The notes under the pieces were generated by a model, which saw only the letters and a program-made list of their open reading frames with translations, was not told the DNA's origin and made no database searches. 64,000 nucleotides of DNA from Macrostomum lignano (Eukaryota): assembly GCA_002269645.1 (NCBI GenBank), contig NIVC01000109.1, forward strand, positions 669,670 through 733,669, read 5' to 3'. How positions within the stretch are numbered: position 1 is the stretch's first letter; every line of letters begins with the position of its first letter. A program made the translations under genes and the position numbers. Positions 3,379 through 56,749 of this stretch are shown one piece after another.

Positions 3379-3819
3379 TTCTTCAATTAAGGCACTGGTT
3401 AAATATTTTCAGTTTTACTACAATCGTATGAAAAAGGGGTTTAAAATAATATCAAACATGCCTTCACCCTACTCTTGTGCGTCAAATATATTCCATTCGG
3501 TCAATTCGCAGCCACGGATTTGTTTACCGTAGCAACGCCATTAGCAACTTGGCAATGTTTTCGTTATACCCAATGCCTTTTCATTGAAACTGAGACAGGA
3601 AATCTTTGAGTGAATTGTCGATTTGCTGCAGCAATGCTAATTAGGCCATAATGGCATGCACGATATGTAGACTTGTTCAATATTCCGCTCTAAAAGGAAT
3701 GAAGCCTTGCTGTTTGGCACCTCAGCCGGTGACTCATGGAATGCTGATTTTCACTCAGGCTGGATAAATGAATGACTTCATTTTTTAGCTGAGCTATGTT
3801 TCACATTTGAGTTATCAGT

Positions 3820-28787: not shown

Positions 28788-31700
28788 ATGAAGGAACTTC
28801 TGTGCCTTGCAATCATTTCGTACTGTATAAGTAACAGTAAGTGACTACGACTGTTTCTCCTTAAAGTTAAAAAATTCAATTATTTTTGCTGATGCTGATT
28901 AGTGGGATTGAAAGTTTTCAGTTTTTGCGAACTAAGCTCTGGATGAGGTTTCGCCATTGGGAAATTCTGTGGGGAGAATTTGCACACTACAACCAGAAAC
29001 AGCTGAGATTTCGTTCACTGAAACTGTGTTTATCTGCCGGTCTCCGGTAGCAGTTCCAGTGAAATCGTACTGGTAAACTGGTGAGCGTACCTCGGACACA
29101 AGGCATACTTGCTGGATTTTGAATCCAGAAGTTCAGAAGTTAAAAAAACACTGAAAACTTTCTTCTGCTTTAGCTGTCCATGGAGCAAATGTCCATGGAG
29201 TTGTAGTTGACTTACGTGCAGTTCTATCTAATTGGCTGACTGTGACAAAAGCGTAAACAACGCAAAATGGTCTCATAACAGGTCATATTTCGAAGTTGTT
29301 GAACCTCCACATCCACAGGCTGTGCCATCAAGGTCTCCAGAGCTGAGATCGCCAATGCCTGGCAATCGTCTGTCTACAATCACCCAGAATGCGACTGCTT
29401 CATCAGATCAATGGACAAGCCGGGGCAGTGGACCTATTTTCTTACCAGCGACACTCCGGACCCCTCCGGCTACCAGTGGCTGCTGCTGAAGCTGTTTCGA
29501 AGTGTCCCAGTGCGCTCCATCACTGTCTATGGGAGACAGGAGGGTGAGTCCTCCCTTCACATTTCAGTATCACTCTGTATAAAATTTCGCACCAGAATTT
29601 GCCCCTTAAACGTTTCTCAGTCAGCCACAGAGCCCTGGGCATCGAAGTGCTGCTCAGTGAGGAGAAGCCAGCCGGTCTGGATGAGGATGCACCCAACTGC
29701 ACTGCAGCCGCTTTCAGTCACAGTCTGTCCGGATTCCTACACTGCGGCTTCACCAGAAATGACAGCAGCAGTTCACTCAGGTCGCAGTCGGTGCATGAAG
29801 TGACCTGCTCAGCTGAGGCCGATGGCAAGGTTTGTCACCCAGTTGCTGCAACTCTTTCAATATTGGAATTCGCAGTGCTGCAGCATCGCATTGCAGATGG
29901 CGCAGTATGTGCTGCTGAGGAAGTTCGTGGCCAATCAGACTGACAAGATGATGAACTTTGTGCTGCTTGAAATTGAGAAAAGAGACTGCTTTCAGCGTAA
30001 CAGAGACAGCAGCTCTGGCTGCTCTCCAGCTAACTTCTGTAAAGTACAACCCAGGGGATGCTTTGTGGAAGACTTGTCTCAGCTCAAGCTCAATGAGAAA
30101 GTGATGATTCGAGCTCGGCTGCCAGGAAACTGCAGAGCACCTGCTGCATCAAACTGCAGCATCAGAATTCGGAAAGGCAGTGACCTCTTGGATTTGAGTT
30201 CGGTAAGAGTTCGATTGAGATAAATACTTGAGCTTGCACCAGATATGGGAATTAACAGCACCGGTGGGCGTTCGCATTGCAGAGGGCGGTCATGGCCAGC
30301 TCTCTGATTCTGAGAACTTTTACAGTGCGAATGGAAATGCACGGGGCGGCTTTGAAGTGCCGACACAGCTGCAGCGGTGAGACTGCGATTGGCACTTCGC
30401 ACACACTGGGTGTGCAGTCAGCCAGTGAGTCAGGCTTACAAACCCAGGCTTACAGCCCTGCACCACTCACTACTCAAACCCTTCCGGAGCCCTGCACCAC
30501 TCACTACTCAAACCCTTCCAGAGCCCTACACCACTCACTACTCAAACCCTTCCAGAGCCCTGCACCACTCACTACTCAAACTCTTCCAGAGCCCTGCACC
30601 ACTCACTACTCAAACCCTTCCAGAGCCCTGCACCACTCACTTTCTGCTCCTCGCAAACACCAGCTGGACAGACGGAGCAGCCGTCAATCTGACAGCTGAC
30701 ACACCGGGTTGCTACTGGATGCCAATCAGCCACAGCTGCTCTGTCCAGTCACAGCGAAATGGAAACACAGCGCTTCAGCTGCTGTCAGTGAGTCTCACAC
30801 TGGCCCATGGTTGCACCTGTGTATTGGGTGCATGGCAACAATGATCTGACATTTAGCTGTGAATACTGACTCTTTTCAGAGCACGAACTCAAGCAGCACA
30901 TTCTCAGTGATTGTGAGCAGGAGCTGGGGAAGCTCAGCATCCGTTTTGTGTCGGGTGAACCAGTCAGGACTGTTCAATGAACTGGCTCATCGCGAGCTGC
31001 CTGCAGTTCTGTGTAAGTGTCCATGTACTTCTGTTTGTTCTTGGATGCATGTTCTCCAGTTCAACAGTTAGATCCAATGCGGAACCAGTTCACCAGTTAG
31101 ATCCAATGCGGAACCAGCTCACCAGTTGGATCCAATGCGGAACCAGCTCACCAGTTAGATCCAATGCGGAACCAGTTCACCAGTTAGAACCAATGCGGAA
31201 CCAGTTCACCAGTTAGATCCAATGCGGAACCAGTTCACCAGTTAGAACCAATGCGGAACCAGTTCACCAGTTAGATCCAATGCGGAACCAGCTCACCAGT
31301 TAGATCCAATGCGGAACCAGTTCACCAGTTAGATCCAATGCGGAACCAGTTCACCAGTTAGAACCAATGCGGAACCAGTTCACCAGTTAGATCCAATGCG
31401 GAACCAGCTCACCAGTTAGATCCAATGCGGTACCAGTTCACCAGTTAAACCCAATGCGGAACTAGTTCACCAGTTAGATCCAATGCGGAACCAGCTCACC
31501 AGTTCAACCCAATGCGGTACCAGTTCACCAGTTAAACCCAATGCGGAACCAGTTCACCAGTTCAACCCCAATGCAGCTCACCCGACTGCCATACCGAACT
31601 GCATTTCAGACCGCAGCTCCGGCCTGTCAATCAAGCTGCCTCCTGGACGAATCCGCAGTGGAAGAGAAGCTCAAGTCACCCTGCAGACTCTGGAAACAGG

Positions 31701-33882
31701 AAATCCGCCTGCTCAGCACTTCTGCTCAATCGGTGGAGCCAATCTGAAACAGCTCAGAGTGAGTTACTCACTGTGAATTTTCAATGCAAAAATTATGCAT
31801 AAATTTATAAATTACTGACTCTTTTGACTCCAGCTGCCATCTGAGTCAAATGCTTCATCAGTGTGGCGACTCAATGCATCGGCCAGCCACAACCAGATTA
31901 GAGTCATCTGCCAGGTCGCTCAGACTCATGCAGACGGCACACTTGTATTCAATCAGTCTGTCAGCAGTGAGCAACTCGATGTGTCATGTGAGTGGATTGC
32001 AGTTCAGCATCTCTGATCCATCAGCAACTCAGATTGCTGAGACAATTAACCATCCATGCTCACACCTGCACGAAAACAGACGCGTCAAGCAGCTCATGGA
32101 ATGCAACTCAGCCTCTGGTGATGAAGGAGGGCGAGCCCGTGTCAGTCTCAGTTCGGTCAGTCGGTGGCAACCCTGAGCCCAGTCACCGGTGCTGGCTGCG
32201 GACGGCCGAGGGTCTCAGCACCAGCATGACCAGGGCCCAGAACACCCCCGAGGCTCAAAATCTAGGCGTTGAGACGCTGGTGGAATCTGAGTTCAGCTTG
32301 AGTTCCACAAGGCAGATGAACGGAGGCTCCTTGGAGTGCAGAGTCTCTCAGCATGGCCTCGAAGATGTGGATGGCAGATTCACACAGAACGTTACTGTAT
32401 ATTGTGAGTTTTCAGCTTCATACTTGTTACAATAAGTAAGCAATTACCTGCTGAGCCCTGTTGCAGGTGTGTCAATTGGAACGTACTTGTGAATTACACT
32501 TTGTTCTATTTCATTGTTGATTTATTAATTATTTATCTGTTTAGAGGCATGGACTGTCAGTCGACAGAAATGAATTATGCATCAATGATATACCTTTTCG
32601 CGTTGGGTCAAAAACGAATCTGGGTTAAATTTTTCTGCAAAAAAAAGTTGAAAATAACACGATGTTGTGGGCTTCTTTGATCTGCTCCGCAGCTCTAAAA
32701 TTCCCTCAATATCCTTATTGAGCATTCAACTCATGGAACCAATGACTGAGACCTGCACCGAGCTCTGAACACAATGATTTATTCCCGTTTTGAATTTTAA
32801 GCCTTTAATTGATGCTGTGGCAATGGTGGCTGTTGTTAGCTCGTACTTGAATGGGACCAAAGATTATGGTATCGGGAACCCTGACCCGCTACGCTGTTTG
32901 CGAATTAACGGACGCTCCGTGATGTGCGGAGTCGTGATAGATAAGCGAGATAATGAGTAACATTTCGTACAAAACATTACTGTGTTCTGTGAGTAGGAAG
33001 GAACGTCTCGAAATTCTAGCAGAAAGCATGCACTAGCTACAGGTTGAAGCCCGACGTAACTTACCAAAATGGAAGGTAAAACTGTCATTGCACTGTCTTG
33101 CAGTTCCTTCGAACAGCATCGGTTGGACTGGCCAGCTACTGAACGGCTCTGAGCTGAGTCTGCTGGGACAGACACAGGAGGGAAACCCGAGGCCCGAGCT
33201 GCACTGCTCGATCAAGTCCGACACAGTCAGCATTGAAGGACTCACTGTGAGTTCATGTTTGTTGCTACCAAAGCTGCTGTCCATCATTGCTGTACATGCA
33301 TTCTCAATGTCATTACTCACGGCCCTCTACTTGACCTTCGATGTTACTGAGCAGCTCACTCCTGAGCCCGATCTCAGAGGCAGACACGGAGGCTGGATTC
33401 GGAGAGCTCGACTGACTCACCAGTTCTTTGAGCGACAGGATGAGGTCACTGTGACGTGTCTGATCAGCCAGAGCTTTCCCGGTCTCGGCGCTGTGTTCTC
33501 ACCGGTGAAGAGCTCGAGGACTGTTCGAGCCGTGTTTCGTGAGCATTCAAGTTTTAGTTTGTGTGAGAATGCTCACAGGGTTCGATCACTGCTCACAAAG
33601 TACACATTGTCTTTCAGCGTGCGCTACAGGCAGCTCTGGCAGCGGGCGCAGTGGACGGCGCAGCGATTGCCGCGGCAGCCGCCGCTGCCAGCCAGGGTGC
33701 GGCCGTGGAGTTTCTGGCTGCTGCCAAGCCGCCCGACCCCAACGTGAGACTCAGTTTGTATCAAGCAGGCATTTCATGTGAGAATAACTCAGCAACACTT
33801 TTATTCCTTCCAGCCGGTTTACTACTGTGCTGTGAGCAGAGGAGAGCGGCACGCGGTCCGTGTGGCATCCGATGGCTTCTGA
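28788..33882 (+). CDS. Gene C1: signal peptide + F-type-lectin/F5-8C-like domain + several C2-type Ig-like domains; no clear transmembrane segment
   Basis: Exons 28788-28836 (MKELLCLAIISYCISN), 29319-29543, 29621-29829, 29897-30202, 30283-30424, 30624-30787, 30880-31012, 31577-31758, 31834-31987, 32080-32403, 33104-33246, 33355-33538, about 33601-33743, 33814-33882, all frame-compatible. Motifs QWLLLKL..V.V.SITVYGRQE..R, QYVLL...NFVLLEI, GNPPA/GNPEP/GNPRP, L.C.V.Q, PVYYCAVS. The penultimate exon boundary is uncertain. Confidence 0.72.
30455..30640. repeat. 35-bp tandem repeat (CCAGAGCCCTGCACCACTCACTACTCAAACCCTTC) overlapping a splice acceptor of gene C1
   Basis: About 5 units; about 4 units in C2 at 47915-48070. 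Confidence 0.9.
31060..31576. repeat. 29-bp minisatellite (AGTTAGATCCAATGCGGAACCAGTTCACC)n ending at a C1 acceptor
   Basis: About 17 units here versus about 4 in C2 (48485-48596). Confidence 0.93.
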
Positions 33883-34169
33883 GGAGGCGGTGTATGGCTT
33901 GCGATGCAGTTTTTTGTGAGCTTTTCCCGTACTGATATTTGACACTAACTAACAAATTAATTTTCGTATTGTCTTATCCAGATTCATTTAACGCGCTCAG
34001 CAAATCAATATGGCTTGTAATTTTTGATAATTTTTTTTAATATTCAGCTCATACTTGAAAATTTCACTCGTTGCCGTGTTGCAGGAGGAGAAGCTGATAT
34101 TTACATGGATCTGTTTCTCATTTTGCGAAGAGGTCTCTGTAAAGGTACAAGATGTTGTTAAGTTTAGAC

Positions 34170-34850
34170 TTTAAATGTTAAAATTTGTTTATTATTCAGA
34201 CTTTTTAAATGCAAAAATTTGTTAATTATTCAGACCTGAAATGTTAAAATTTATTAATTATTCAGACTTTAAATGTTAAAATTTGTTAATTATTCAGACT
34301 TTAAATGTTAAAATTTGTTAATTATTCAGACCTGAAATGTTAAAATTTGTTCATTATTCAGACTTGAAATGTTAAAATTTGTTAATTATTCAGACTTGAA
34401 ATGCAAAAATGTGTTAATTATTCAGATTTTAAATGTTAAAATTTGTTAATTATTTAGACTTTTGGAATGTTAAAATTTGTTAATTATTCAGACTTTAAAT
34501 GTTAAAATTTGTTAATTATTCGACTCGAAATGTTAAATTTGTTAATTATTCAGACTTTTTGAATGTTAAAATTTGTTAATTATTCAGACTTTTTGAATGT
34601 TAAAATTTGTTAATTATTCAGACTTTTTGAATGTTAAAATTTGTTAATTATTCAGACTTTTGGAATGGTAAAAATTATTAATTATTTAGACTTTAAATGT
34701 TAAAATTTGTTAATTATTCAGACTTTAAATGTTAAAATTTGTTAATTATTCAGACCTGAAATGTTAAAATTTATTAATTATTCAGACTTTAAATGTTAAA
34801 ATTTGTTAATTATTCAGACTTTAAATGTTAAAATTTGTTAATTATTCAGA
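34170..34850. repeat. AT-rich 32-34-bp minisatellite (TTAAAATTTGTTAATTATTCAGACTTTAAATG)n
   Basis: Read directly; paralog at 51190-51722. Confidence 0.93.
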
Positions 34851-34895
34851 GTGTAACCTGTTTATCTATGATTCTACTGCTTTTCCAGCTTTGAT

Positions 34896-35080
34896 GGGGT
34901 TGTGGGGTTATAGTGGCTAGAGCGTCGGATTCACGACTGAAAGATCAGAGGTTCGATTCTCGTCCCATTCGGAACAATTCTGTCCTTGAGGAAGACACTC
35001 AATTCAACTCTGCATTGCTTCAGTTCACCAAGCTGTAAAATGGGTGCCAGCATTAGCTGGGGTAATTGAGGGTGTGTGTG
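34896..35080 (+). mobile_element. tRNA-derived CORE-like SINE, 3'-truncated and fused to Gypsy gag
   Basis: A-box-like TAGTGGCTAGAGC, B-box GGTTCGATTC, CORE-like TGTCCTTGAGGAAGACACT...CTGTAAAATGGG. Diverges from the 16151 copy after GTGTGTGGCG. Confidence 0.78.
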
Positions 35081-38000
35081 GCGGTGGTCGGTCACGAAAC
35101 GGCGGAGCTGGACGCGTTTGCAAAGATCGCCGACAGCATGCTGGCTGTCGCCGGTTGCGCCACCCCGTTCGCCTCTGTAAACCGCACCTCGCGGCCACCG
35201 GCCAAGAGCACCTGAGACTGAGAGGCAACGCTGGTTCTTTTCGTAACAGGAAGCCCGACGACTCGCTCCAACCGGAACTCACGCCGACGACCCAAGATCT
35301 GCAACGGTCATCTCTACTACGCTGCCGATGCTCGCACCTGTCGACCATGGTGCCAGTGGCCAGGCTCGAAACCGCCGACACTGCTGGCCAGCCGTCAGCC
35401 AACTCCGGTTCAGTCCCGGGCGTCCAGCCCGACGCCAAGCCAGGCGTCAAACTAGTCGGTCATGTGCCTCGGCCGAGCCGCGACCCGTCAAAGGCCACCA
35501 CGTTGCTGCTTCGTTGCCAAGTTCTCCGTGCGCCCGTTTCGTTCATCGTTGACACCGGCGCCGAACGGTCGCTCCTTCCTTTGCAGTTTGTTCCTCAAAA
35601 TCTACTCGTACCCACTTATGTCAAGCTTTGTGGCGTCGAAGGCCGCAAAATCCGAACCTAGACTATACCCTTGCGACGTTCATTGTTACTAGTACTGCGC
35701 CAATCCTCGGTGCAGATTTCTTCCTCAAGCTCGGTCTCCTAATTGACCTGAATTCACGGCGAATTCAAGACCCTGTGACATCTTTGCGTGCGACTCTCTG
35801 TTCTTCTAGTGATTCAGTCCCTCAAATCAACGCCAACACGCTGCTTGAGCCCACCACACCGCTTGCTCGGTTCCCTCGAGTTCTGGAAGCTCCGGACTAC
35901 ACCGCAGCACCCGTCAAGGCCTATCACTTCGTTCCGATGGCAGATGAGGACATCGAGAAGACAGTGCTTTGTACCCCGTTCGGCTCGTTCGAATACCTGC
36001 GGATGCCCTTCAGCCTCCAGAACGCCGCTAGCACGTTTCAGCGATATGTTGACTCCGTGTTTCGGGACCTACCATTTGTTTCTACCTACATCGACGACAT
36101 ACTAGTGCACAGCAGGTCTCGGGAAGAGCACCAAGTACACATTGAAACAGTGCTGCAACGACTTACAGACAAAGGTTTGGGAGTAAATTCGGACAAGTGT
36201 CGGTTTTTCCGCGAGTCTGTAGAGTTTCTCGGCTATCTCGTGTCTGCGGAGGGCATTCGGCCCCTGCCCCACCGTGTCGAGGCCCTCCGACAGCTGCCAC
36301 CTCCTACTGACCACCAGGCCTTGCAGCGCTACCTCGGGATGTTTGGATTTTACCAACGGTGCATCCCTGATTACGCAAAGACCGTCCTACCATTGCGGCA
36401 GCTCGTCTCAATGACATTCGTCTGGACGGAGCACCACGGTCGCGCCTGGAAAGCGCTTCAGAACAGCCTCACGGAAGCGGTCATGCTCGCCTTTCCGCAT
36501 CCCCAGGCTACGTTTACCATCACAACGGACGCCAGCTCGACTGCCATCGGTGGTGCTCTACATCAAGTGGTGGACGGCCAGTCTACACCCCTAGCTTTCT
36601 ACTCGCGGAAACTGTCCGGCACCGAGGCTGCGTACAGCACCTTCGATCGGGAACTCCTCGCCATCGTCGCCGCGGTCAAGGCCTGGAAGCACATGATTCA
36701 AGGCCAGCGGACAACTGTGTTCTGCGACCACAAGCCTATCATCGGAGCCTTCGGCAACAGAAAGGAGCGTTTTTCGGACCGACAGCAACGCCACCTATCC
36801 GTGATCACTGAATTTGTCAGCGACATCGTTCACATTGCCAGTAGGGACAACGTGGTTGCCGATGCACTATCTCGTCCCAACGTCACCTCCGAAGCGCAGC
36901 CACCATCGTCCGTAAGACTGCTAGCTGGCATCCCGCCCTCGGTGGATTTGCCAGCTATCGCGCGAGCCCAGAAAGACAGTCTACCCGCCAACGATCCGCC
37001 AGGAGGCTTGTTCAGCAACTTCGATATCGGAATTAAAGACAACCCATTACGCTATCAGACTTCGCAGACTAACCCGTGTCCCGTAGTTCCTGAAGTACTA
37101 CGATGTGCGGTGTTCAACTCGCTGCATTCGTTCGCACACCCCGGCAGAAAAGCTACGCAACGGCTCATTAGCTATCGTTTTCTTCTGGCCGCTAATGGGT
37201 GCCGACATTCGCAAGTGGGTAGCTGAGTGCCAACAATGCCAGCAGTGCAAGACTGGACGACATGTTCAACGCCCACTGCAGCAGCTGCCTGTGCCATCTC
37301 AGAGATTCACGACGGTACACATTGACCTGGTCGGACCGTTACCGCCTTCTGAGTCTGAAGACCCCTTCACGACGATACACATTGACCTGGTCGGACCGTT
37401 ACCGCCTCCTGAGTCTAAAGACCCCGGCCCGAAGCCTTGCTACCTACTCACCATGATCGATGCCTACTCACGCTGGTTCGAGGCAGCACCGCTTTCGAAC
37501 ACTGCCGCCACATCAGTCGCACGAGCCTTCCTGGAAACCTGGATTTCTCGGTTCGGCCCACCTTTGACGCTGATCAGTGACCAGGGATCCCAATTCCGAG
37601 CGGAGCTCATAAGAGACTTGACGGACCTACTCGGCATCCACCACATCCGCACTTCAACCTATAATCCGAGAGCAAACGTTGTCATCGAACGTGCACACCG
37701 GACGCTGAAGGTCGGTTTGAAGGCGCGCGGCAAGAACTGGCTGCAGCAGCTGCCCGTCGTGCTCCTGGGCATGCGCATTTTCCCAGATGAGTCAGGTGCC
37801 TCTCCGTTTTCCGTTGTTACGGGTGAGCAACCGCTGGTCCGACCAGTCGTCACCGACACTTCTGCGCTCAAGGAGCTCTCGACTAGCCTACATCAGCTTT
37901 TCTTCCCATACCGGCAGCTGAGAACGCGCGAGATAGCCGTGCATCTGCCAGCCGCGCTGAGTTCGTGCACACACGTCTGGTTGCGGTTGGACCGGGTGCG

Positions 38001-38599
38001 ACGACCCCTGGAGGCTCCTTACCAAGGCCCGTACGCGGTACTGGACAGGTACGACACCACAATGATACTCAAGATCAACGGCAAGCCTACCGTAGGTTCG
38101 ATCGATCGTGTCAAGCCGCCACCCTACCAACAGCCCAACAAGAGCAGCCAGCAGCTACACCGGCCCCGCCAAGCGACGCTCCCGCCTCTAACACAAGGTC
38201 GCGCAGCGCAAATGCGTGCGATTCAACAGCGAGACCTCCGTGCAAGTTTTCCAGAAAGACAGTCCACCTAGCAATACCTGAACAGTGTTCATAAACTGAT
38301 CAACCTATGACATCTGCAATGCTTACCTACTCGTTCCCCTGCGCTGTTCGAACTTTTTGTCTCCGATTAGATAATGCATAGTGATGTACTTCATCTAGGA
38401 GGGGGAGTATCTTGTAGCAGTGAGAAACATGAATCAGCTAGCAGCGAGTCCCTTTTGGCCCTAGACGATATTCTTAAGCTGTTCTCGTTACTGTCTCTAA
38501 AATCGAATAAAGCCGAAGTTAGAGCCCGTCAAGGGTTTACAACCGTTCTATCTCACTTCCACAAAACAAATTCCACTGCGTTTTGATTCACTCGCTACA
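35081..38599 (+). mobile_element. Defective Ty3/Gypsy LTR retrotransposon, copy 1 (gag end, PR, partly deleted RT, RH, IN, 3' LTR 38413-38599; no 5' LTR)
   Basis: Gag C..H..Y...A..C.PWC, protease FIVDTGA, RT YIDDIL, RNase H TTDAS/ELLAI, integrase HPG..CQQC, HIDLVGPLP, SDQG, ERAHR; PPT AGGAGGGGGAG; LTR TGTAGC...GCTACA with AATAAA. The gag motif suggests a CsRN1/Kabuki-like lineage (inference). Confidence 0.95.
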
Positions 38600-39514
38600 C
38601 ACGTTAAGAAAGGTGTAGTCAAATATTATGTCATTATTATTATCTTTGCTTTGACACTGGGTTTTCTGCTGCCATGCTTCACAGAAACGTTATTGCTTTG
38701 TCATATAACTTGTCTTTAACTCAATCAAGGATCGCAAAAAGTGCAGTGAATTGTTTTTAAACAATTATCTTTTGTATGGTTACTCAGCTTTTCTCTTGAA
38801 AAGCTGAGTCTTTTTCTCTTGAATTTCAATAAAATTTTGTTTGTATTCGAGCGCATGGAGACACAGAACACTTCTGTGCATTTTGCATAGTTTCACGCAG
38901 TACACAATACGTTCCGGGCTTCAATTTCAATTAATTTCAATGATTGTCATGTTGGCGATAAATTTATAATTTTACCTCATTTAAATTCCACTCGATCCCT
39001 TTTTTAGAAAGATTGGCACCTGTTTATGGCAGCGAGCCGAAGGCTGCAGTAATGCTAAACACGGCTTGTTTACCTCCGGCGCGGCTCATCGCATGCCAGC
39101 GGTGAATGCCATATATAGTTGGGAACGCCACAGCCAAATCATGAGTGTATATATGTGAGGTAAACATGTGACTTCCTGACCGATTTTCTGTCCTTAGTTT
39201 ATAGCTTCTCGGTTACTAAAAATACACAAGTACCTGATTGTTTCCGAAATTATTGATTCAAAAATAGAAATTCTGGTAGCATTGCAACATGAACATTTGT
39301 GACAGCACCACACCTACATGTCGCTACCTGAAGTATATGTATCACCTAGTACTAGCAGGCGATTGTATCAAGGTCCATCTCTGTAAATGTAAAGTAGATA
39401 CTTCTCCCTTACCCCGTCGGGACTCCATCCCCGGCGGTGGGGGGACTGTTATCGTATCCAGCCTTCTAGAAATTTCAGTGTAAACAACACTTTCTATATA
39501 AGGCAATTTAACCG

Positions 39515-40750
39515 TGTCTTCCTCTCTGCCTCCCCTCTCTGTGTCTCTCTGCCTCCCCTCTCTGTGTCTCTCTCTCTCTGCCTCTCCTCTCTGTGTCTGT
39601 CTCTCTCTGCCTCTCCTCTCTGTGTCTGTCTCTCTCTGTGTCTCTCTCTTTCTCTCTCACTCTGCCTCCCCTCTCTGTGTCTCTCTGTCTCCCGTCTCTG
39701 TGTCTCTCTGCCTCCCCTCTCTGTGTCTCTCTGCCTCCCCTCTCTGTGTGTCTCTGCCTCCCCTCTCTGTGTCTCTCTGCCTCCCCTCTCTGTGTGTCTC
39801 TGCCTCCCCTCTCTGTGTGTCTCTGCCTCTCCTCTCTGTGTCTGTCTCTCTCTGTGTCTCTCTCTTTCTCTCTCACTCTGCCTCCCCTCTCTGTGTCTCT
39901 CTGTCTCCCGTCTCTGTGTCTCTCTGCCTCCCCTCTCTGTGTCTCTCTCTCTGCCTCCCCTCTCTGTGTCTCTCTGCCTCCCCTCTCTGTGTCTCTCTGC
40001 CTCCCCTCTCTGTGTCTCTCTGCCTCCCCTCTCTGTGTCTCTCTGCCTCCCCTCTCTGTGTCTCTCTGCCTCCCCTCTCTGTGTCTCTCTGCCTCCCCTC
40101 TCTGTGTCTCTCTCTCTGCCTCGCCTCTCTGTGTCTCTCTGCCTCCCCTCTCTGTGTCTCTCTGCCTCCCCTCTCTGTGTCTCTCTGCCTCCCCTCTCTG
40201 TCTCTCTGCCTCCCCTCTCTGTCTCTCTGCCTCCCCTCTCTGTGTCTCTCTCTCTGCCTCCCCTCTCTGTGTCTCTCTGCCTCCCCTCTCTGTGTCTCTC
40301 TGCCTCCCCTCTCTGTGTCTCTCTGCCTCCCCTCTCTGTGTCTCTCTGCCTCCTCTCTCTGTCTCTCTGCCTCCCCTCTCTGTCTCTCTGCCTCCCCTCT
40401 CTGTCTCTCTGCCTCCCCTCTCTGTCTCTCTGCCTCCCCTCTCTGTCTCTCTGCCTCCCCTCTCTGTCTCTCTGCCTCCCCTCTCTGTGTCTCTCTCCCT
40501 CTGCCTCCCCTCTCTGTGTCCCTCTGCCTCCCCTCTCTGTGTCTCTCTCCCTCTGCCTCCCCTCTCTGTGTCCCTCTGCCTCCCCTCTCTGTGTCTCTCT
40601 CCCTCTGCCTCCCCTCTCTGTGTCTCTCTCCCTCTGCCTCCCCTCTCTGTGTCTCTCTCCCTCTGCCTCCCCTCTCTGTGTCCCTCTGCCTCCCCTCTCT
40701 GTGTCTCTCTGCCTCCCCTCTCTGTGTCCCTCTGCCTCCCCTCTCTATGT
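39515..40750. repeat. CT-rich minisatellite (CTCTCTGTGTCTCTCTGCCTCCC)n
   Basis: Read directly; the source of spurious 400-aa ORFs; paralog at 63190-63815. Confidence 0.97.
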
Positions 40751-41784
40751 TTCCCTCCTGCTGAGCACATGCTTTCCGAATATTTCCGAAATTTAGAATT
40801 TTCTATGAAATTAAATAAAGCCACCCGACACTATATGTACTTAAGTCTAACAAGCCTAACTACACTCAAAACCTAAACTGCTAAACAAAAACAAACCTTT
40901 GGAACTGCTGCCTTCACGCCTCATAATTACTTAACACTGCTACATACTGATACATTTTATCAATTCAGTTGTTTCAATGTTAATTATCTTTATATATTTA
41001 ATACACCTGGCTAAAAACTATTGTTTAAAATTTTATATTTAATTTTGTATTTCTACACACATATTAATTAATCAATTAAGTTCAATTAAGATAATTACAT
41101 TAATAAGTTGCTTCGCGCACCACTAGCAAATGGAACCAGTTTATTTCCTCTTCTTAAGCATGAATAAATCTATAAACAGGCTTTCCTGAGGGTTAGCTAT
41201 TTAGCTACTAAAATAGCAAAAGCATGCTTGCCAGAGGAGGAGATTGCCTGATATTCCCTCTCACCCCGGCCATGTGGATGAAAAGTTATTCCTGAAGCAG
41301 ATCCTAGAATTCACGTACTGAAAACGTGACAAGAGGAATCACAAACAGCCCTTTAAGTGATTTGAGTAGCTTTATTTAACAGACCTTGGCGTCCCACTAG
41401 TTATCTGCTTTTAGCTGCTTTGTTACTAAAAATAGATTACGTTAAGCAGAATTTCTTACAAATTAATAAATAAATAATCTTTGGAATGAAATGCTCGTCT
41501 AAAATTTCCACCTTTCCACTCTGAACATTGTAAGCCACATCGAAACACAGGTTTAATTGTTTATTCAGTCACATGTGCATCGATTATTCGTTGACTTGCT
41601 GGGGCATGCACATTCGAAATGAAGAAAATTTACCCAAAACTAATAATTTCTTAATGATTACCTGCTACCTGCTACTTTTACAAGTAGTAGAGGCGAATAT
41701 TAATTTCGAAAATGATGCCGGATGCGAAGAATGAAAAGACTTAAAAAAAATTTATTGTCTCAAAAAACCTACTTATCTAGTCGG

Positions 41785-42200
41785 ACTTATGTACCTATGT
41801 ACCTATGCACCTATGTACCTATGTACCTATGTACCTATGTACCTACGTACCTATGTGCCAATGTACCTATGTATCTTATGTATCTATGTATCTATATATC
41901 TATATATCTATGTATCTATGTACCTATGTACCTATGTACCTATGTGCCAATGTACCTATGTACCTATGTATCTATGTATCTATGTATCTATATATCTATG
42001 TAATCTATGTACATATGTACCTATGTGCCTATGTACCTATGTATCTATGTACCTATGTACCTATGTATCTATGTATCTATGCATCTATGTACTTATGTAC
42101 CTATGTACCTATGCATCTATGCATCTATGTATCTATTTATCTATGCATCTATGTACCTATGTACCTATGTACCTATGCATCTATGCATCTATGTATCTAT
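41785..42200. repeat. (TATGTACC)n/(TATGTATC)n microsatellite
   Basis: Read directly. Confidence 0.95.
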
Positions 42201-42319
42201 GTATTATTAGTAAAAACCAGTTTTGGCTGATCTTCTTTAAACTGATTTGCTTTGTATGCAGTCGAAAAATTAGTAAATCAACCTTATCCACTAGGTAACA
42301 TTAGGCCTACTTTAACCCC

Positions 42320-42860
42320 ACTCTCTCACCCACCCGCTCCTTCACGCACCCGCTCCTTCACCCACCCGCTCCTTCACCCACCCGCTCCTTCACCCACCCG
42401 CTCCTTCACCCACCCGCTCCTTCACCCACCAGCTTCTTCACCCACCCGCTCCTTCACCCACCCGCTCCTTCACCCACCCGCTCCTTCACCCACCCGCTTC
42501 TTCACCCACCCACTCCTTCACCCACCAGCTTCTTCACCCACTAGCTTCTTCACCCACCCGCTCCTTCACCCACCCGCTTCTTCACCCACCCACTCCTTCA
42601 CCCACCAGCTTCTTCACCCACCCGCTTCTTCACCCACCCGCTCCTTCACCCACCCACTCCTTCACCCACCCGCTTCTTCACCCACCCACTCCTTCACCCA
42701 CCCCACTCCTTCACCCACCTCACTGGTTCACTCACTTCACTTCTTCTCGCATCCCACTCCATCGCCAACCTCATACCATCACCCATCCCACTCCTTCACC
42801 CACCTCACTAACATCACCCACCTCACTAACATCACGCACCTCACTCCTTCACCCACCTCG
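42320..42860. repeat. C-rich (CACCCGCTCCTTCACC)-like repeat, paralog of 24095-24640
   Basis: Read directly; the flanking sequences are homologous. Confidence 0.88.
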
Positions 42861-43009
42861 CCCGCCAGCCAACACAGAGATAAAAGCAAAGACAAAAACA
42901 GTGAATGATTTCCGCTTCCCAAATAGTTGCTCTTTTCGAATCAGTGATTTAAAAATTCAAACAAAAATGCCCACATTTGCTGCTTCTAGCCATTCAGTAG
43001 CAAATGCGG

Positions 43010-44114
43010 TGAGAAGGCCCAAGCAACCCGAGCAGCGAGTCTCCCCCCCCCCAAATGGGACCCGTCGCACCCAGCAGACCAGCGAGTACCGATCTAGAGA
43101 AGGCGAATCTTTTCTGTCAGATCTACAGCGCCGTCTCCAGGGTCGCAACCAGCCCTAGGGACCGCCCAGTGACCCGACCAGCCAACGAGGTGCTTAAAGA
43201 ACACTGCTGTGACGGGCACGGAGCTCGAAGTGGTATCTGCTCGCCCTTCAGCAACCCGGAGCACTGTAATGCCATCCGCAAGTCTGCAAGGCCCCCGGGC
43301 AGGATGGCGTCACCAATGACATGCTAAAGCACCCCACCCTCCACGGATGACAGGACCCTGTCCATCACTAACCGCTCTTGGCAGAAGGGGGAATGTCCTT
43401 GGCAATGGAAATGAGCCATCATCATTCCGTTCCAAAAAAGGGAAAGGACGCCAGCAAGCCTGACTCCTACCGCCCAGTCGCCCTCACGAGTTGTATAGCC
43501 AAACTGGCAAAGCGGCTGGTCCTCCAGCGTCTCCGCCATGCCCTCGAAACCTCAGGCAAGGGCCGCTCTACGGAGGAATTGATTGCGAGCACCTGTCAGG
43601 AAATTTTCGACAAATTGGAGTCCACCCCGCATCTCCGGTCCATTCTTTGTCTTCTCGACTTCAGCCGCGCCTACGATAGAGTCTGGCGCGCGGCACTGTA
43701 CAAGAAACTGCGGGAACTCGGCGTCCAAAGAGACGTCATCCGCTGGATCCGCGCTTTTCTGACGGATCGCCGAGCCAGAGTGTGCGTGAACAACTGCATT
43801 AGCAAGCATTAGCATTAGCATTAGCATTAGCAATTAGCATTAGCATTAGCATTAGCATTAGCATTAGCATTAGCATTAGCATTAGCATTGGCATTAGCAT
43901 TAGCATTAGCATTAGCATTGGCATTAGCATTAGCATTAGCATTAGCATTAGCATTAGCATTAGCATTAGCATTAGCAAGGAGCGCATCTTCCACGAGGGC
44001 CTACCACAGGGTAGCGTTCTCGCCCCCACCCTCTGACTGGTGTATATTAATGACCTGGCAACCGCTGTGTCCGCGAAGTCAACAGAATGCTCACTGAAGC
44101 TGTATGCCGATTTT
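43010..44114 (+). mobile_element. Internal fragment of a non-LTR retrotransposon RT (I-group-like), truncated at both ends
   Basis: KPDSYRPVALTSCIAKL, LDFSRAYDRVW, IRWIRAFLTDR, EGLPQGSVLAP, YINDL, ending at KLYAD; no tail. Confidence 0.9.
43798..43979. repeat. (CATTAG/TTAGCA)n array of about 28 units inside the RT coding sequence, bounded by a 9-bp direct repeat ATTAGCAAG
   Basis: ATTAGCAAG at 43798-43806 and 43971-43979; removing one copy plus the array restores the frame NCISKERIF. Confidence 0.9.
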
Positions 44115-46379
44115 TATGCCACAAATTTTATCTATAAGCGGATTGCTAGTCTAACTGTATGCTATTGTAGATTAGCAATCCATTCTAATTTAACAGACAG
44201 TCATACTAAATGAGTATATTATTTATTGTATATGCAATATGATTCACTTCCAAATTTCATTTAATTTTGCTTTTCTGTACATAAAAATGCCATGAGTTCA
44301 ATGCTTGTCATTTATCATGTTCACTGGTACAGTTTTTAGCTAATCTTTTTTACTGAAATCCAGCACTGACAATCAGAACTGATTAATGCACCTCTGCTGT
44401 TTCTATGCATATCTGTCTCTCTTCACACACTGCAAGCATTCCGGAATCTTTGATTCTGATCAAACACATAGACTAAGACAGACAGACACTAAGATAGACA
44501 GACAGACAGAGTTTTAGAAGAGTTTCAGCGAATGCAACCTACCGATATGTATCGAAATGTAGATTTCTTTTACTGCTTGCACTTTTACTTGACGGTTTGT
44601 GTACTTTTTCGCTCTTTTTGCTTGGCCGCTCAGCACTGCCCTGAGGAAAGGGGATCGGAGCCGCGGGATTTGCACCCTCGCACCGGGCACTGCACTGCTC
44701 TGGTGCAGCTGCACCAATCGGTTAAGCGCACCTGCACTGCTATAAACTGTTTAACGTCCTCCCTGCGGCCTGATCCCCTTTTTCGGACTGCTGGCTGAAA
44801 CATTTCGCCGAATATTTCTGTCGATCGCCTCGCTTTTCCTTGTTTTAACTTTTTATTTTGTCATCTGAGCTCCACAGCAGAACCGATGGGGAGTCCGACT
44901 GCTACCGATGGCGTTTGATAATCACTGATTGAGTAGCTTTGCTTGCCTCTCTGACTTGCGTGTGTTCCAATGACTGATTGACTGATTGATTGACTGATTG
45001 ATTGATAACTCTTATCTGATTGTTTTATTACTCTGTTAATCAGAAATGCGAATAAAGCGTTGCGAAAATAAAGTATTACTGAAGCTGAATAATTTATTGT
45101 TTTAGGAGTTTTGAAGATTGTCTGAATTGAATTTGCTTTGTTTTATTCTGCCTGAGTAAATTTCACAGATTGCAATCCTAGAATTGCCGATGCGTGATTG
45201 GCTAAGAAGTCTGGCCAATCTGCGCGCTATATTAAACTCCTAAATATATGCACTTTTAAGGAGTAATGCAACAACAACAAGCTTTTATTGCCCTGTGAAA
45301 AGCGGCTCTCGTGAGCTACGGCTTAGGAGCGTGTAAAGCAGTAAAACCATTTTATACTACAAGCCTGCGCATTTAATTAGTTGATAGACCAAGTCAATAG
45401 AAAATGGTTTAACTGCTATCGTTAGTTAATTACTCCCATTTGATAAACAACTAACTCTGGTATAAGAAATATTGTATAAGAAGGGTGAAGGGTGCTATTA
45501 GAGACCATAAAAGTGGTAAATATTGTACTCAGCAAAACAGCTAGCTCACAGAAAATAGTACATGTCGGAATCTAAGCTGATTCGTGATGTTTTAAGATGC
45601 AACATGTTTGTTGAAATTGGCGTTGACTCTCATTGAGCCGAAATCGAGATGCAGTGCGGAATTCTTCGAAGAGTTTATCCTTTGCCTGAGTTGCCTGGGT
45701 CGCCAAACGTTGGCGTCTTTATCGTCAGAGCCCAGGTCACTGTCCGAAAACATGACAAAAAGACACTCCTACTAACCTAAGAGTACAATTTGGCCCTTGA
45801 AATCTTAACTATCGGAGTTAGGAGCTAGAAATGAAATTCGCTCCTTCTATAGGACACGCACTCCTAAAATTCACTCCGAAACGGCAACACCCAGCACCCA
45901 CAGTAGCTCCAACTCCTCTCTCCTTATTCTTTAGCACTTGCAGAAACCTTTATGAGGTCTCCTAAATTCACCAAGGAGTCTCCTATGTCCTTAAAGGAGC
46001 CTCCTAGGTCTTAAAATTTACTCTTGATTCTATAGCACAGGCAGGCAGGCAGAAAATGAATTTCAGGATCTTCTGTCCTCACATTTCTTCAAGCCCCTCA
46101 CTGCTGAGAGAAGCTGCCGATTCCGCCATCTTCGCCCGCCTCATTGGCCTCCAATCTCGCACCTCGCTTGCCTGTTTTGCAGCCAGCCAGCCAGCCAATC
46201 TTCTTCCAGCCTATGGGCTGCGGCTGCACTTCCGCCTCCACACGCAGCCCTGCCGCTTTCCTATAAACATCGGCTCGACTAAGGTTGGGAGGCCCAGCGA
46301 TACCACAGCTGTTGCTAGCAGCAGCTTATATGTAAAATTGTTTTTTTACAAAGTACAGCTCTGCGATATGACTGTCCAC

Positions 46380-49300
46380 ATGAAGGAACTTCTGTGCCTT
46401 GCAATCATTTCGTACTGTATAAGTAACAGTAAGTGACTACGACTGTTTCTCCTTAAAGAATTCAATTATTTTTGCTGATGCTGATCAGTGGGATTGAAAG
46501 TTTTCAGTTTTTGAGAACTAAGCTCTGGATGAGGTTTCGCCATTGGGAAATTCTGTATACATTGCATACATTGCGGGATTTTGAATCCAGAAGTTCAGAA
46601 GTTAAAAAAACACTGAAAACTTTCTTCTACTTTAGCTGTCCATGGAGCAAATGTCCATGGAGTTGTAGTTGACTTACGTGCAGTTCTATCTAATTGGCTG
46701 ACTGTGACAAAAGCGTAAATAACGCACAATGGTCTCATAACAGGTCATATTTCGAAGTTGTTGAACCTCCACATCCACAGGCTGTGCCATCAAGGTCTCC
46801 AGAGCTGAGATCGCCAATGCCTGGCAATCGTCTGTCTACAATCACCCAGAATGCGACTGCTTCATCAGATCAATGGACAAGCCGGGGCAGTGGACCTATT
46901 TTCTTACCAGCGACACTCCGGACCCCTCCGGCTACCAGTGGCTGCTGCTGAAGCTGTTTCGAAGTGTCCCAGTGCGCTCCATCACTGTCTATGGGAGACA
47001 GGAGGGTGAGTCCTCCCTTCACATTTCAGTATCACTCTGTATAAAATTTCGCACCAGAATTTGCCCCTTAAACGTTTCTCAGTCAGCCACAGAGCCCTGG
47101 GCATCGAAGTGCTGCTCAGTGAGGAGAAGCCAGCCGGTCTGGATGAGGATGCACCCAACTGCACTGCAGCCAATTTCAGTCACAGTCTGTCCGGATTCCA
47201 ACACTGCGGCTTCACCAGAAATGACAGCAGCAAGTCACTCAGGTCGCACTTGGTGCATGAAGTGACCTGCTCAGCTGAGGCCGATGTCAAGGTTTGTCAC
47301 CCAGTTGCTGCAACTCTTTCAATATTGGAATTCGCAGCGCTGCAGCATCGCATTGCAGATGGCGCAGTATGTGCTGCTGAGGAAGTTCGTGGCCAATCAG
47401 ACTGACAAGATGATGAACTTTGTGCTGCTTGAAATTGAGAAAAGAGACTGCTTTCGGCGTAACAGAGACAGCAGCTCTGGCTGCTCTCCGGCTGACTTCT
47501 GCAGGCAATATCAGAGCGGATGCTTTGTGGAAGACTTGTCTCAGCTCAAGCTCAATGAGAAAGTGGTGACTCGAGCTCGGCTGCCAAGAAACTGCAGAGC
47601 ACCTGCTGCATCAAACTGCAGCATCAGAATGCGGAACGGCAGTGATCTCTTGGATTTGAGTTCGGTAAGAGTTCGATTGAGATAAATTGGTTGAGCTGCA
47701 CCTGATATGGGAATTAACAGCACAGGTGGGCGTTCGCATTGTAGAGGGCGGTCTTGGCCAGCTCTCTGATTCTGAGAACTTTTACAGTGCGGCTGCGGAT
47801 GCACGGGGCGGATTTGAAGTGCCGACACAGCTGCAGCGGTGGGACTGCGATTGGCACTTCTCACACACTGGGTGTGCAGTCAGCCAGTGAGTCAGACTTA
47901 CAAACCCAGGCTTACAGCCCTGCACCACTCATTACTCAAACCCTTCCAGAGCCCTGCACCACTCACTACTCAAACCCTTCCAGAGCCCTGCACCACTCAC
48001 TACTCAAACCCTTCCAGAGCCCTGCACCACTCACTACTCAAACCCTTCCAGAGCCCTGCACCACTCACTTTCTGCTCCCCGCAAACACCAGCTGGACAGA
48101 CGGAGCGGCCGTCAATCTGACAGCTGACACACCGGGTTGCTACTGGATGCCAATCAGCCACAGCTGCTCTGTGCAGTCACAGCGAATTGGAAACACAGCG
48201 CTTCAGCTGCTGTCAGTGAGTCTCACACTGGCCCATGGTTGCACCTGTGTATTGGGTGCATGGCAACAATGATCTGACATTTAGCTGTGAAAACTGACTC
48301 ATTTCAGAGCACGAACTCAAGCAGCACATTCTCAGTGACTGTGAGCAGGAGCTGGGGAAGCTCAGCATCAGTTTTGTGTCGGGTGAACCAGTCAGGACTG
48401 TTCGATGTAACGGCTCGTCGCGAGCTGCCTGCAGTTCTGTGTAAGTGTCCATGCACTTCTGCTTGTTCTTTGATGCATGTTCCCCAGTTCACCAGTTAGA
48501 TCCAATGCGGAACCAGTTCACCAGTTGGATCCAATGCGGAACCAGCTCACCAGTTAGATCCAATGAGGAACCAGTTTATCAGCTAGACCCAATGCAGCTC
48601 ACCTGACTGCCATACCGAACTGCATTTCAGACCGCAGCTCCGGCCTGTCAATCAAACTGCCTCCTGGACGAATCCGCAGTGGAAGAGAAGCTCAAGTCAC
48701 CCTGCAGACGCTGGAAACAGGAAATCCGCCTGCTCAGCACTTCTGCTCAATCGGTGGAGCCAATCTGGAACAGCTCAGAGTGAGTTACTTACTGTGAATT
48801 GTCAATGCAAAAATTATGCATAAATTTATAAATTACTGACTCTGTTGACTCCAGCAGCCATCTGAGTCAAATGCTTCATCAGTGTGGCGACTCAATGCAT
48901 CGGCCAGCCACAACCAGATGAGAGTCATCTGCCAGGTCGCCCAGACTCGTACAGACGGCACACTTGTATTTAATCAGTCTGTCAGCAGTGAGCAACTCGA
49001 TGTGTCATGTGAGTGGATTGCAGTTCAGCATCTCTGATCCATCAGCAACTCAGATTGCTGAGACAATTAACCATCCATGCTCGCACCTGCACGAAAACAG
49101 ACGCGTCAAGCAGCTCATGGAATGCAACTAAGCCTCTGGTGATGAAGGAGGGCGAGCCCGTGTCAGTCTCAGTTCGGTCAGTCGGTGGCAACCCTGAGCC
49201 CAGTCACCGGTGCTGGCTGCGGACGGCCGAGGGTCTCAGCACCAGCATGACCAGGATCCAGAACACCCCCGAGGCTCAAAATCTAGGCGTTGAGACGCTG

Positions 49301-50901
49301 GTGGAATCTGAGTTCAGCTTGAGTTCCACAAGGCAGATGAACGGAGGCTCCTTGAACTGCATAGTCTCTCAGCATGGCCTCGAAGATCTGGATGGCAGAT
49401 TCACACAGAACGTTACTGTCTATTGTGAGTATTCAGCTTCATACGTGTTACAATAAGTAAGTAATTACCTGCTGAGCCCTGTTGCAGGTGTGTCAATTGG
49501 AACGTACTTGTGAATTACACTTTGTTCTATTTCATTGTTGATTTATTAATTATTTATCTGTTTAGAGGCATGGACTGTCAGTCGACAGAAATGAATTATG
49601 AATCAATGACATAACTTTTCGCGTTGGGTCAAAAACGAATCTGGGTTCAATTTTTCTGCAGAAAAAAGTGAAAAAAACACGACGTTGTGGGTTATTTGAT
49701 CTGCTCCGCAGCTCTAAAATCCCCTCAATATCCTTATTGAGCATTCAACTCACGGAACCAATGACTGAGACCTGCACCGAGCTCTGAACACAGTGGTTTG
49801 TTCCCGTTTTGAATTTTAAGCCTTTAATTGATGCTGTGGCAATGGTGGCTGTTGTTAGCTCGTACTTAAATGGGACCAAATATTATGGTATCGGGAACCC
49901 TGACCCGCTACGCTGTTTGCGAATTAACGGACGCTCCGTGATGTGCGGAGACGTGATAGATAAGCGAGATACTGAGTAACATTTCGTACAAAACATTACT
50001 GTGTTCTGTGAGTAGGAAGGAACCTCTCGAAATTCTAGCAGAAAGCATGCACAAGCTACAGGTTGAAGCCCGACGTAACTTACCAAAATGGAAGGCAAAA
50101 CAGTCATTGCACTGTCTTGCAGTTCCTTCGAACAGCATCGGTTGGACTGGCCAGCTACTGAACGGCTCTGAGCTGAGTCTGCTGGGACAGACACAGGAGG
50201 GAAACCCGAGGCCCGAGCTGCACTGCTCCATCAAGTCCGACACAGTCAGCATTGAAGGACTCACTGTGAGTTCATGTTTGTTGCTACCAAAGCTGCTGTC
50301 CATCATTGCTGTACATGCATTCTCAATGTCATTACTCACGGCCCTCTACTTGACCTTCGATGTTACTGAGCAGCTCACTCCTGAGCCCGATCTCAGAGGC
50401 AGCAACGGAGGCTGGATTCGGAGAGCTCGACTGACTCACCAGTTCTTTGAGCGACAGGATGAGGTCACTGTGACGTGTCTGATCAGCCAGAGCTTGCCCG
50501 GTCTCGGCGCTGTGTTCTCACCGGTGAAGAGCTCGAGGACTTTTCGAGCCGTGTTCCGTGAGCATTCAAGTTTTAGTTTGTGTGAGAATGCTCACAGGGT
50601 TCGATCACTGCTCACAAAGTACACATTGTCCTTCAGCGTGCGCTACAGGCAGCTCTGGCAGCGGGCGCAGTGGACGGCGCAGCGATTGCCGCGGCAGCCG
50701 CCGCTGCCAGCCAGGGTGCGGCCGTGGAGTTTCTGGCTGCTGCCAAGCCGCCCGACCCCAACGTGAGACTCAGTTTGTATCAAGCAGGCATTTCATGTGA
50801 GAATAACTCAGCAACACTTTTATTCCTTCCAGTCGGTTTACTACTGTGCTGTGAGCAGAGGAGAGCGGCACGCGGTCCGTGAGGCATCCGATGGCTTCTG
50901 A
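46380..50901 (+). CDS. Gene C2: duplicate of C1 (lectin-like + multi-Ig), apparently intact
   Basis: Same exon structure as C1. I saw no stops or frameshifts in the inferred frame. It ends ...SVYYCAVSRGERHAVREASDGF-stop. Confidence 0.72.
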
Positions 50902-56042: not shown

Positions 56043-56749
56043 CACGTTAAGAAAGGTGTAGTCAAATATTACATTATTATTATCTTTGCTTTGACACTGG
56101 GTTTTCTGCTGCCATGTTTCACAGAAACGTTATTGCTTTGTCATATAACTTGTCTTTAACTCAATCAAGGATCGCAAAAAGTGCAGTGAATTGTTTTTAA
56201 ACAATTATCTTTTGTATAGTTACTCAGCTTTTCTCTTGTTTTTCTCTTGAATTTCAATAAAAAGTTTGTTTCTATTTGAGCGCATGAAGACACAGAACAC
56301 TTCTGTGCATTTTGCATAGTTTCACGCAGTACACAATACGTTCCGGGCTTCAATTTCAATTTTACCAAATTTAAATTCCACTCGATCCCTTCTTTAGAAA
56401 GATTGGCACCTATTTATGGCAGCGAGCCAAAGGCTGCAGCAATGCAAAACACGGCTTGTTTACCTCCGGCGCGGCTCATCGCATGCCAGCGGTGAATGCC
56501 ATATATAGTTGGAAACGCCACAGACAAATCATGAGTGTATATATGTGAGGTAAACATGTGACTTCCTGACCGATTTTCTGTCCTTAGTTTATAGCTTCTC
56601 GGTTACTAAAAATACACAAGTACCTGATTGTTTCCGAAATTATTGATTCAATAATAGAAATTCTGGTAGCATTGTAACATGAACATTTGTGACAGCACCA
56701 CACCTACATGTCGCTACCTGAAGTATCACCTGATATGTATCACCTAGTA

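Follow-up and report, generated by a model that had tools for sequence, protein, structure and literature searches.

Patchy amino-acid divergence in a tandem pair of lectin-like/immunoglobulin genes of Macrostomum lignano probably reflects a mosaic of pre-existing variant blocks

Why do two nearly identical neighbouring genes differ in dense patches of amino-acid replacements? The question is raised by a 64,000-nucleotide window of the flatworm Macrostomum lignano (assembly GCA_002269645.1, contig NIVC01000109.1, forward-strand positions 669,670 to 733,669; positions below are those of the window), which carries two head-to-tail copies, C1 and C2, of a gene predicted to encode a lectin-like domain followed by immunoglobulin (Ig)-like domains. 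An earlier note on this DNA had ascribed the patches to diversifying selection, or gene conversion among further paralogs, acting on a binding surface in two recent copies. Our analysis favours, with a probability of roughly 0.6, the reading that the patches are pre-existing variant blocks, shuffled or retained by gene conversion in a Macrostomum-specific tandem multigene family.

Self-BLAST and sensitive BLAST comparisons revealed a direct, colinear head-to-tail repeat whose period is about 18.2 kb and whose units lie about 1.3 kb apart. Each unit comprises one intact gene of at least 12 exons and 700 codons, with a 34-bp minisatellite in an intron, as well as larger minisatellites on the flanks and a Gypsy-type retrotransposon in degenerate form. 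The window contains no N gaps, and tblastn with all family proteins found no more than two gene copies in it; as the matches were C1 and C2 alone, the presence of further copies inside the window was rejected. The 12-exon model was built from splice signals, reading frames, intron phases and homologous proteins. GT and AG stand at every junction of both copies, no stop occurs through 700 codons, and the C2 exons span 46368-46428 through 50371-50557. The units and the parts of the gene, all on the forward strand, are listed here; numbers with P denote homologous proteins, P0001-P0008 being UniProt models of M. lignano.

24012 to at least 40938: tandem unit C1, with upstream minisatellite, gene, retrotransposon and downstream minisatellite, colinear with 42233-64000 by self-BLAST.
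42233 to at least 64000: tandem unit C2, which passes the window end and holds a private 6.3-kb insertion at 56727-63026 (self-BLAST).
C1 28776-28836, C2 46368-46428: exon 1, with the ATG and a signal-peptide-like sequence (MTVHMKELLCLAIISYCISN) that fits the N-terminus of P0003; identical in the two copies.
C1 29319-29543, C2 46781-47005: exon 2, where the F-lectin/discoidin-like domain begins; inside a 444-nt identical tract.
C1 29621-29829, C2 47083-47291: exon 3, with a variable patch at 29710-29825.
C1 29897-30202, C2 47359-47664: exon 4, end of the lectin-like domain and Cys-rich subdomain.
C1 30028-30055, C2 47490-47517: hypervariable block of exon 4, between two conserved Cys.
C1 30283-30376, C2 47745-47838: exon 5, with a patch at 30330-30350 (RMEMHGAAL in C1, RLRMHGADL in C2); UniProt models run this exon on to about 30425.
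C1 30672-30787 and 30880-31012, C2 48100-48215 and 48308-48440: exons 6 and 7, Ig-like domain 1.
C1 30976-30989: patch in exon 7 (FNELAH in C1, FDVTAR in C2).
C1 31610-31758 and 31834-31987, C2 48631-48779 and 48855-49008: exons 8 and 9, Ig-like domain 2; exon 9 is backed by homology to P0016 residues 409-505.
C1 32080-32403, C2 49101-49424: exon 10, Ig-like domain 3, 99% identical to P0001.
C1 33104-33246 and 33352-33538, C2 50123-50265 and 50371-50557: exons 11 and 12, Ig-like domain 4, with 50% identity to P0017 residues 266-325.
33618 or 33634 to 33743, and 33814-33882 including the TGA (33880-33882): tentative last two exons.
35000-38360: pol of a degenerate Gypsy-type long terminal repeat (LTR) retrotransposon, with reverse transcriptase (RT), RNase H and integrase open reading frames (ORFs), in the gene's 3' flank within the duplicated unit; at about 52.1-55.6 kb in C2.

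The two copies differ at 67 of 2101 coding nucleotides, and the differences described in the earlier note proved accurate. Exon 2 is identical between C1 and C2, and so is intron 2. Exon 3 has exactly the six replacements reported (A>N, L>Q, S>K, Q>H, S>L and G>V), arising from eight nucleotide changes with none synonymous, and the approximate counts for exon 4 were exact as well: 19 nucleotides differ, 12 residues are replaced, three codons differ only silently, and the block NFCKVQPRGC > DFCRQYQSGC lies where it had been placed. RMEMHGAAL > RLRMHGADL in exon 5 and FNELAHRE > FDVTARRE in exon 7 were recovered to the letter, and all cysteines are kept between the copies. Permutation tests on the 67 differences showed that the clustering is real and far above chance. 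Gaps of at most 3 nt between differences number 22 against 6.1 expected, and the densest 30-nt window holds 12 differences against 4.5 (in both cases 0 of 20000 random placements were as high), while ten codons carry at least two changes against 2.05 expected (0 of 5000).

Divergence along the unit is very uneven, ranging from 0% over 444 nt to about 9-10% in 30000-30400 (exons 4 and 5). The longest identical run (444 nt, 29266-29709) was reached in 0 of 5000 permutations, the mean of which was 148, and mismatch divergence between C1 and C2 amounts to 0.63% in the retrotransposon, 2.44% in other non-coding DNA, 3.14% in introns and 3.19% in exons. The 444-nt identity and the low divergence of the retrotransposon thus point to recent homogenisation of those stretches. 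The exons are more diverged than local non-coding DNA; the published genome-wide rate of single-nucleotide polymorphisms (SNPs) between paralogs is 1.1% in coding sequence versus 2.2% overall (PMC10733133).

Alignment of C1 and C2 with eight close M. lignano proteins covered 38 amino-acid differences in exons 1-10. Both states occur elsewhere in the family at 21 of them, five are private to C1, eight are private to C2 and four are without comparison. At essentially all shared sites P0004 has the C1 state and P0002 the C2 state, and P0001, P0003, P0005, P0006 and P0007 each carry a different combination of the two types, as recombinants do. At the protein level, 244 of 630 site pairs failed the four-gamete test, with a minimum of ten exchanges (Rm=10). 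C1 and C2 hence show both signs by which interlocus gene conversion is recognised, identical tracts longer than chance and, in the proteins, blocks common to paralogs in incompatible combinations. Conversion among further paralogs, as the earlier note had suggested, is therefore supported by the mosaic sharing and the uneven divergence. Its view of the copies as recent was only half right: the variant blocks, because they are common to other loci, are probably older than the subgenome split. M. lignano has three subgenomes that are about 2% diverged (PMC10733133), which accounts for many near-copies.

These patterns suggest two sequence types, type 1 represented by C1 and P0004 and type 2 by C2 and P0002, and the patches would then not be a burst of new point mutations after a recent duplication. 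On the simplest reading, the tandem pair of type 1 and type 2 would have arisen before the subgenomes split. Long stretches such as exons 1-2 and the retrotransposon may have been evened out by interlocus gene conversion or unequal recombination, and the same exchange would leave or move short divergent tracts across exons and introns, giving rise to mosaic copies elsewhere in the genome. Several points weigh against this account. The conversion tracts were deduced from protein mosaics and a single pairwise alignment of DNA; frame errors and fragments among the UniProt models could inflate the apparent recombination, and homoplasy at hypervariable sites could mimic mosaics. Furthermore, the density of non-synonymous changes in exons 3, 4, 5 and 7 is about twice that of introns (34/575 versus 57/1815, P=0.003) and 2.5 times that of non-coding DNA (P=1 × 10−5), so that positive selection could be at work besides conversion. 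Multi-nucleotide clusters are, however, non-independent events, so that density tests overstate significance, and with each cluster counted once the event density in these exons is about background.

Could diversifying (positive) selection on a ligand-binding surface nevertheless be the main cause? Such selection is compatible with conversion as the shuffler, and we regard it as possible, if doubtful. Apart from the raised density, it would explain why the eight changes in exon 3 are all non-synonymous and why the amino acid differs in ten of ten multi-hit codons. The variable sites avoid the conserved framework, lying at positions weakly conserved across the family (0.20 versus 0.36, P=0.011). 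Variability peaks in the Cys-rich subdomain, where family amino-acid diversity is 10.6%, compared with 6.0% in the lectin-like domain, 4.5% in Ig1 and about 2% in Ig2 and Ig3; above all it peaks in the six-residue loop FC-xxxxxx-C of this subdomain, which is different in nearly every family member and which AlphaFold2 (AF2) puts at a predicted hairpin tip. The type-1 and type-2 blocks persist at at least two loci despite homogenised surroundings, the ORFs are maintained, and type 2 has gained two N-glycosylation sequons not found in type 1, NFS and NGS, created by the replacements A126N and K258N in these codons:

C1 29710-29712 and 30173-30175, C2 47172-47174 and 47635-47637: codons 126 and 258, respectively.

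The ratio of non-synonymous to synonymous divergence (dN/dS), determined by the Nei-Gojobori method (NG86) on the single sequence pair C1/C2, did not bear selection out. It is 0.94 for the whole gene (16.5 synonymous differences, Sd, and 50.5 non-synonymous, Nd), 1.23 for the N-terminal region (residues 22-298, P=0.34), 1.08 for the variable span (codons 120-380; proportions of synonymous and non-synonymous differences pS=0.053 and pN=0.057), 0.87 for the Cys-rich subdomain, the most variable part (pS 0.085, pN 0.075), and 0.74 for Ig2-4. With a whole-gene ratio below 1 the claim of selection fails on this pair by the refuting threshold that the earlier note itself had set (dN/dS of 1 or less), and exon 3 taken alone, with its zero synonymous and eight non-synonymous changes, gives P=0.135. 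Inside the patches, silent sites and intron 4 have diverged as much as replacement sites; the joint rise of silent divergence (pS 0.053-0.085) and intron 4 divergence in these tracts argues for older or imported tracts and not for codon-level selection. Moreover, the variable sites show no enrichment in loops of the secondary structure (about 12 of 22, against 50% expected). Amino-acid change in C1 and C2 is tolerated at about the neutral rate.

Are the genes then under any constraint at all? With tandem repeats masked, we counted 0 indel events in 2101 exon nucleotides versus 24 in 5165 aligned non-coding nucleotides, where about 9.8 would be expected in the exons (P about 6 × 10−5; P=3 × 10−3 against introns only). 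Neither copy has lost any of the 22 internal splice sites that the 12 exons require. The lack of indels together with the intact splice sites and cysteines argues for reading frames kept under selection. This speaks against relaxed constraint, by which C1 and C2 would be incipient pseudogenes, unexpressed and drifting, and the patches neutral remnants. For such decay one may cite that transcript-based NCBI (PAA) models exist for distant members and none for the C1/C2 subfamily, that C2 has private changes at positions invariant in all relatives (e.g. SLECRV > SLNCIV), that a hydropathy scan of 33.4-34.15 kb found no clear transmembrane helix, and that dN/dS is near 1 everywhere, even the 0.74 of Ig2-4 included. 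In addition, intron 10 of both copies (32778-32993 and 49797-50012) harbours a pseudo-exon of Ig-like sequence (GIGNPDPLRCLRING...E*HFVQNITVF), interrupted in C1 and C2 by one and the same in-frame stop, which looks like a decayed fifth Ig domain. The transcript-based models, the private changes of C2 and this pseudo-exon also weigh against selected frames. Set against 2 × 700 codons with neither indel nor stop, and replaced sites biased to weakly conserved positions, decay is an unlikely explanation.

That the assembly falsely joined homeologous or haplotypic versions of one locus in tandem is unlikely: the non-coding divergence of 2.4% does equal the reported inter-subgenome SNP rate of 2.2-2.4%, and chimeric scaffolds make up 36% of the Mlig_3_7 assembly length (PMC10733133), but at least eight close M. 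lignano sequences exceed what three subgenomes would yield from a single-copy locus, the join has no N gap, a divergence of 0 to 10% along the unit misfits a uniform homeolog pair, C2 has its private 6.3-kb insertion, and the variation between the C1 and C2 sequences would be real even with a false join.

What kind of protein is encoded? The predicted product consists of a signal peptide, a head of about 165 amino acids that is modelled as a divergent beta-sandwich, a Cys-rich subdomain of about 110 amino acids, four Ig-like domains and possibly a short tail, and the C1/C2 proteins look secreted or membrane-bound. The spliced translation of the region matches M. lignano proteins only, at 42-88% identity, with at least eight distinct close sequences in the proteome. 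A profile search of 1.84 billion representatives returned only 20 relatives; the ten checked beyond the known M. lignano matches were all from this species except one copepod (Tigriopus) protein with four F5/8 type C / FTP domains (E=6.5 × 10−9 to the family profile). A literature search on Macrostomum Ig/lectin receptors found no relevant paper, and the family appears to be essentially Macrostomum-specific and undescribed.

The "lectin-Ig" architecture proposed in the earlier note is supported solely at the level of fold and profile, and the canonical fucose-binding motif is absent. The family profile matched two PDB entries, both F-type lectins (3cqo, E=2 × 10−4; 1k12, E=0.25), on the core W-x-x-x-L ... 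S-V-T-I-x-x-R ... R-x-x-G-x-E-I. An AF2 model of the head from 14 sequences reached a mean predicted local distance difference test (pLDDT) score of 65, with 70-87 in the core; it replaced a first model from six sequences, which was distrusted at pLDDT 41 and had the same fold class. With the later model, the best Foldseek matches were F-lectin, CBM32, SUN and APC10 jelly-rolls (E 4 × 10−4 to 5 × 10−3, target-normalised template modelling (TM) score 0.45-0.56), 3cqo ranking first. The fucose motif of the F-type lectin domain (FTLD), HX24RXDX4(R/K), corresponds to His52/Arg79/Arg86 of the Anguilla lectin AAA (PMC5712786). Neither strict nor loose regular expressions matched it in C1; in the hidden Markov model (HMM) alignment to 1k12 both Arg align, a Pro stands opposite His52, and there is no Cys82-Cys83 pair. 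The calcium (Ca) motif h2DGx was matched neither in C1 nor in any family member scanned. Pfam gave no family for C1 exons 2-7 at E up to 1 and nothing useful for single-exon ORFs, while P0012 and P0025 score 17 bits on F5/8 type C (PF00754 / PF22633), below the cut-offs of about 28. As modelled, the head is F-lectin/discoidin-like in fold and not a demonstrable lectin.

The Ig-like domains were read from repeated G-N-P-x-P-x-x-x-C ... C-x-V patterns with phase-1 boundaries. For exon 10, the profiles C2-set_2 (18.1 bits, cut-off 21) and Ig_3 (15.9 bits) both match weakly, and the relative P0013 reaches 21.0 bits against an Ig-domain profile. Distant relatives known at full length are type I membrane proteins and carry tyrosine motifs resembling immunoreceptor tyrosine-based inhibitory or switch motifs (ITIM/ITSM); one of them, P0014, is encoded by a single, non-tandem gene. 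As pattern matches only, such motifs are VVYAQV and TEYTEI in P0014, TVYLEI in P0025 and VYYCAV in the tentative C1/C2 tail. The two tentative last exons would add to the protein a weakly hydrophobic stretch rich in Ala and a brief tail with the C-terminus ...P/S-VYYCAVSRGERHAVR-V/E-ASDGF, the ORF and splice sites kept in both copies being the sole support of this part of the model. UniProt models P0001-P0008 omit exon 9 and finish after Ig3, and several open in the wrong frame, e.g. with MRLLHQINGQAGAV in P0004 and P0002. A search with the C-terminal half of the protein returned no transcript-based model and no match spanning Ig4 or the tail. The M. lignano gene models of this family are thus incomplete and need re-annotation.

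As to the surroundings of the genes, the possibility that the retrotransposon interrupts the gene was rejected, as a plausible stop (33880-33882) lies upstream of it. Minisatellites with 8- to 35-bp units are unusually dense, and Tandem Repeats Finder (TRF) masks about 12.9 of 64 kb. The array at 24.0-24.7 kb is homologous (about 83%) to that at 42.2-43.0 kb, but the unit lengths are 17 and 16 bp. The C2-private insertion 56727-63026 is flanked by 1.6-kb inverted repeats that are 99.9% identical (56812-58413 / 61429-63031) and contains nearly perfect direct repeats (57374-58402 = 59898-60927; 59431-59837 = 60927-61334); no ORF of at least 150 amino acids was found in it, and either a foldback-type element or a local fault of the assembly may account for it. 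The remaining features are as follows.

30454-30650, no strand: 34-bp minisatellite in intron 5, the C2 array being one unit shorter.
668-1400, 2603-3400, 4107-5020, 14415-15192, 16430-17322, 20588-21643, 24012-24736, 39539-40938 and 42233-42956: examples of minisatellite arrays.
7189-7818 and 9899-10342, forward strand: ORFs upstream of the duplication with RNase H-like motifs by eye, resembling non-LTR retrotransposon fragments.
13844-14269, forward strand: RhoGAP-like exon outside the duplication, whose sole database relative contains PF00620; it matches no annotated M. lignano protein, only a 69%-identical fragment from a read-archive (Logan) assembly.

What would the locus mean for the biology of flatworms? 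Hardly any receptors are known by which these worms mount innate immunity or recognise self and partners, and M. lignano offers a model amenable to genetics. As it stands, the locus mainly displays ordinary paralog mosaicism in a highly duplicated genome, and on its sequence it is of moderate interest as a candidate variable receptor. If expressed and diversified, this undescribed, lineage-restricted family would provide a concrete receptor candidate and a clean case of gene conversion interacting with selection in a neopolyploid genome. A further-reaching proposal takes C1 and C2 for two types of binding domain in a putative flatworm-specific recognition-receptor family, with an F-lectin-like head, a variable Cys-rich loop, an Ig stalk and, in relatives, ITIM/ITSM-like tails; selection would keep the two types against ongoing concerted evolution, and the family would be a KIR- or FREP-like counterpart. 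We consider this improbable. If true, it would add independently evolved variable receptors of an invertebrate, with possible roles in immunity or in the recognition of sperm or partners in this hermaphrodite.

How, finally, does the pair compare with known systems? The F-type lectins (Anguilla AAA, 1k12; striped-bass FBP32, 3cqo) and the wider F5/8 type C / galactose-binding-domain-like fold have in common with it the core W-L-x-x-L ... V-x-S-[VI]-T-V-x-G-R ... R-A-x-G-I-E-V. Unlike in them, the fucose and Ca motifs are absent, C1 gives no Pfam match for this region, and the lectin-like domain is followed by a Cys-rich subdomain and then by Ig domains. Oyster sperm bindin, in which recombination and substitution in loops produce F-lectin variants (PMC5712786), likewise has an F-lectin-type fold. 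In contrast to C1/C2, where it is unproven, positive selection is documented in bindin, many isoforms of which keep the His-Arg-Arg triad that is absent here, and bindin lacks Ig domains. The Hydractinia genes Alr1/Alr2 belong to a cluster of relatives and encode Ig-type surface proteins that vary chiefly in the domain farthest from the membrane, a pattern that C1 and C2 resemble. The variable domain of Alr is itself Ig-like, however, and its diversity is allelic in outbred populations and linked to a fusion/rejection phenotype. Mollusc FREPs form a multigene family whose members look like mosaics of common variant blocks, and as in C1/C2 a lectin-like domain is joined to Ig domains. Their domain order is reversed (the lectin-like domain is N-terminal here), the lectin type is another one, and the fibrinogen domain by which a FREP is recognised was found in no frame or exon of the C1/C2 region. 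With vertebrate KIR/LILR/Ly49-type clusters there is no homology past the Ig fold, and an N-terminal lectin-like head is absent in KIR and LILR. The likeness to them lies in the ITIM/ITSM-like tyrosine motifs of distant C1/C2 relatives, by pattern only, and in the organisation of such clusters, in which tandem receptor genes pass through duplication, unequal crossing-over and gene conversion to become mosaic paralogs.

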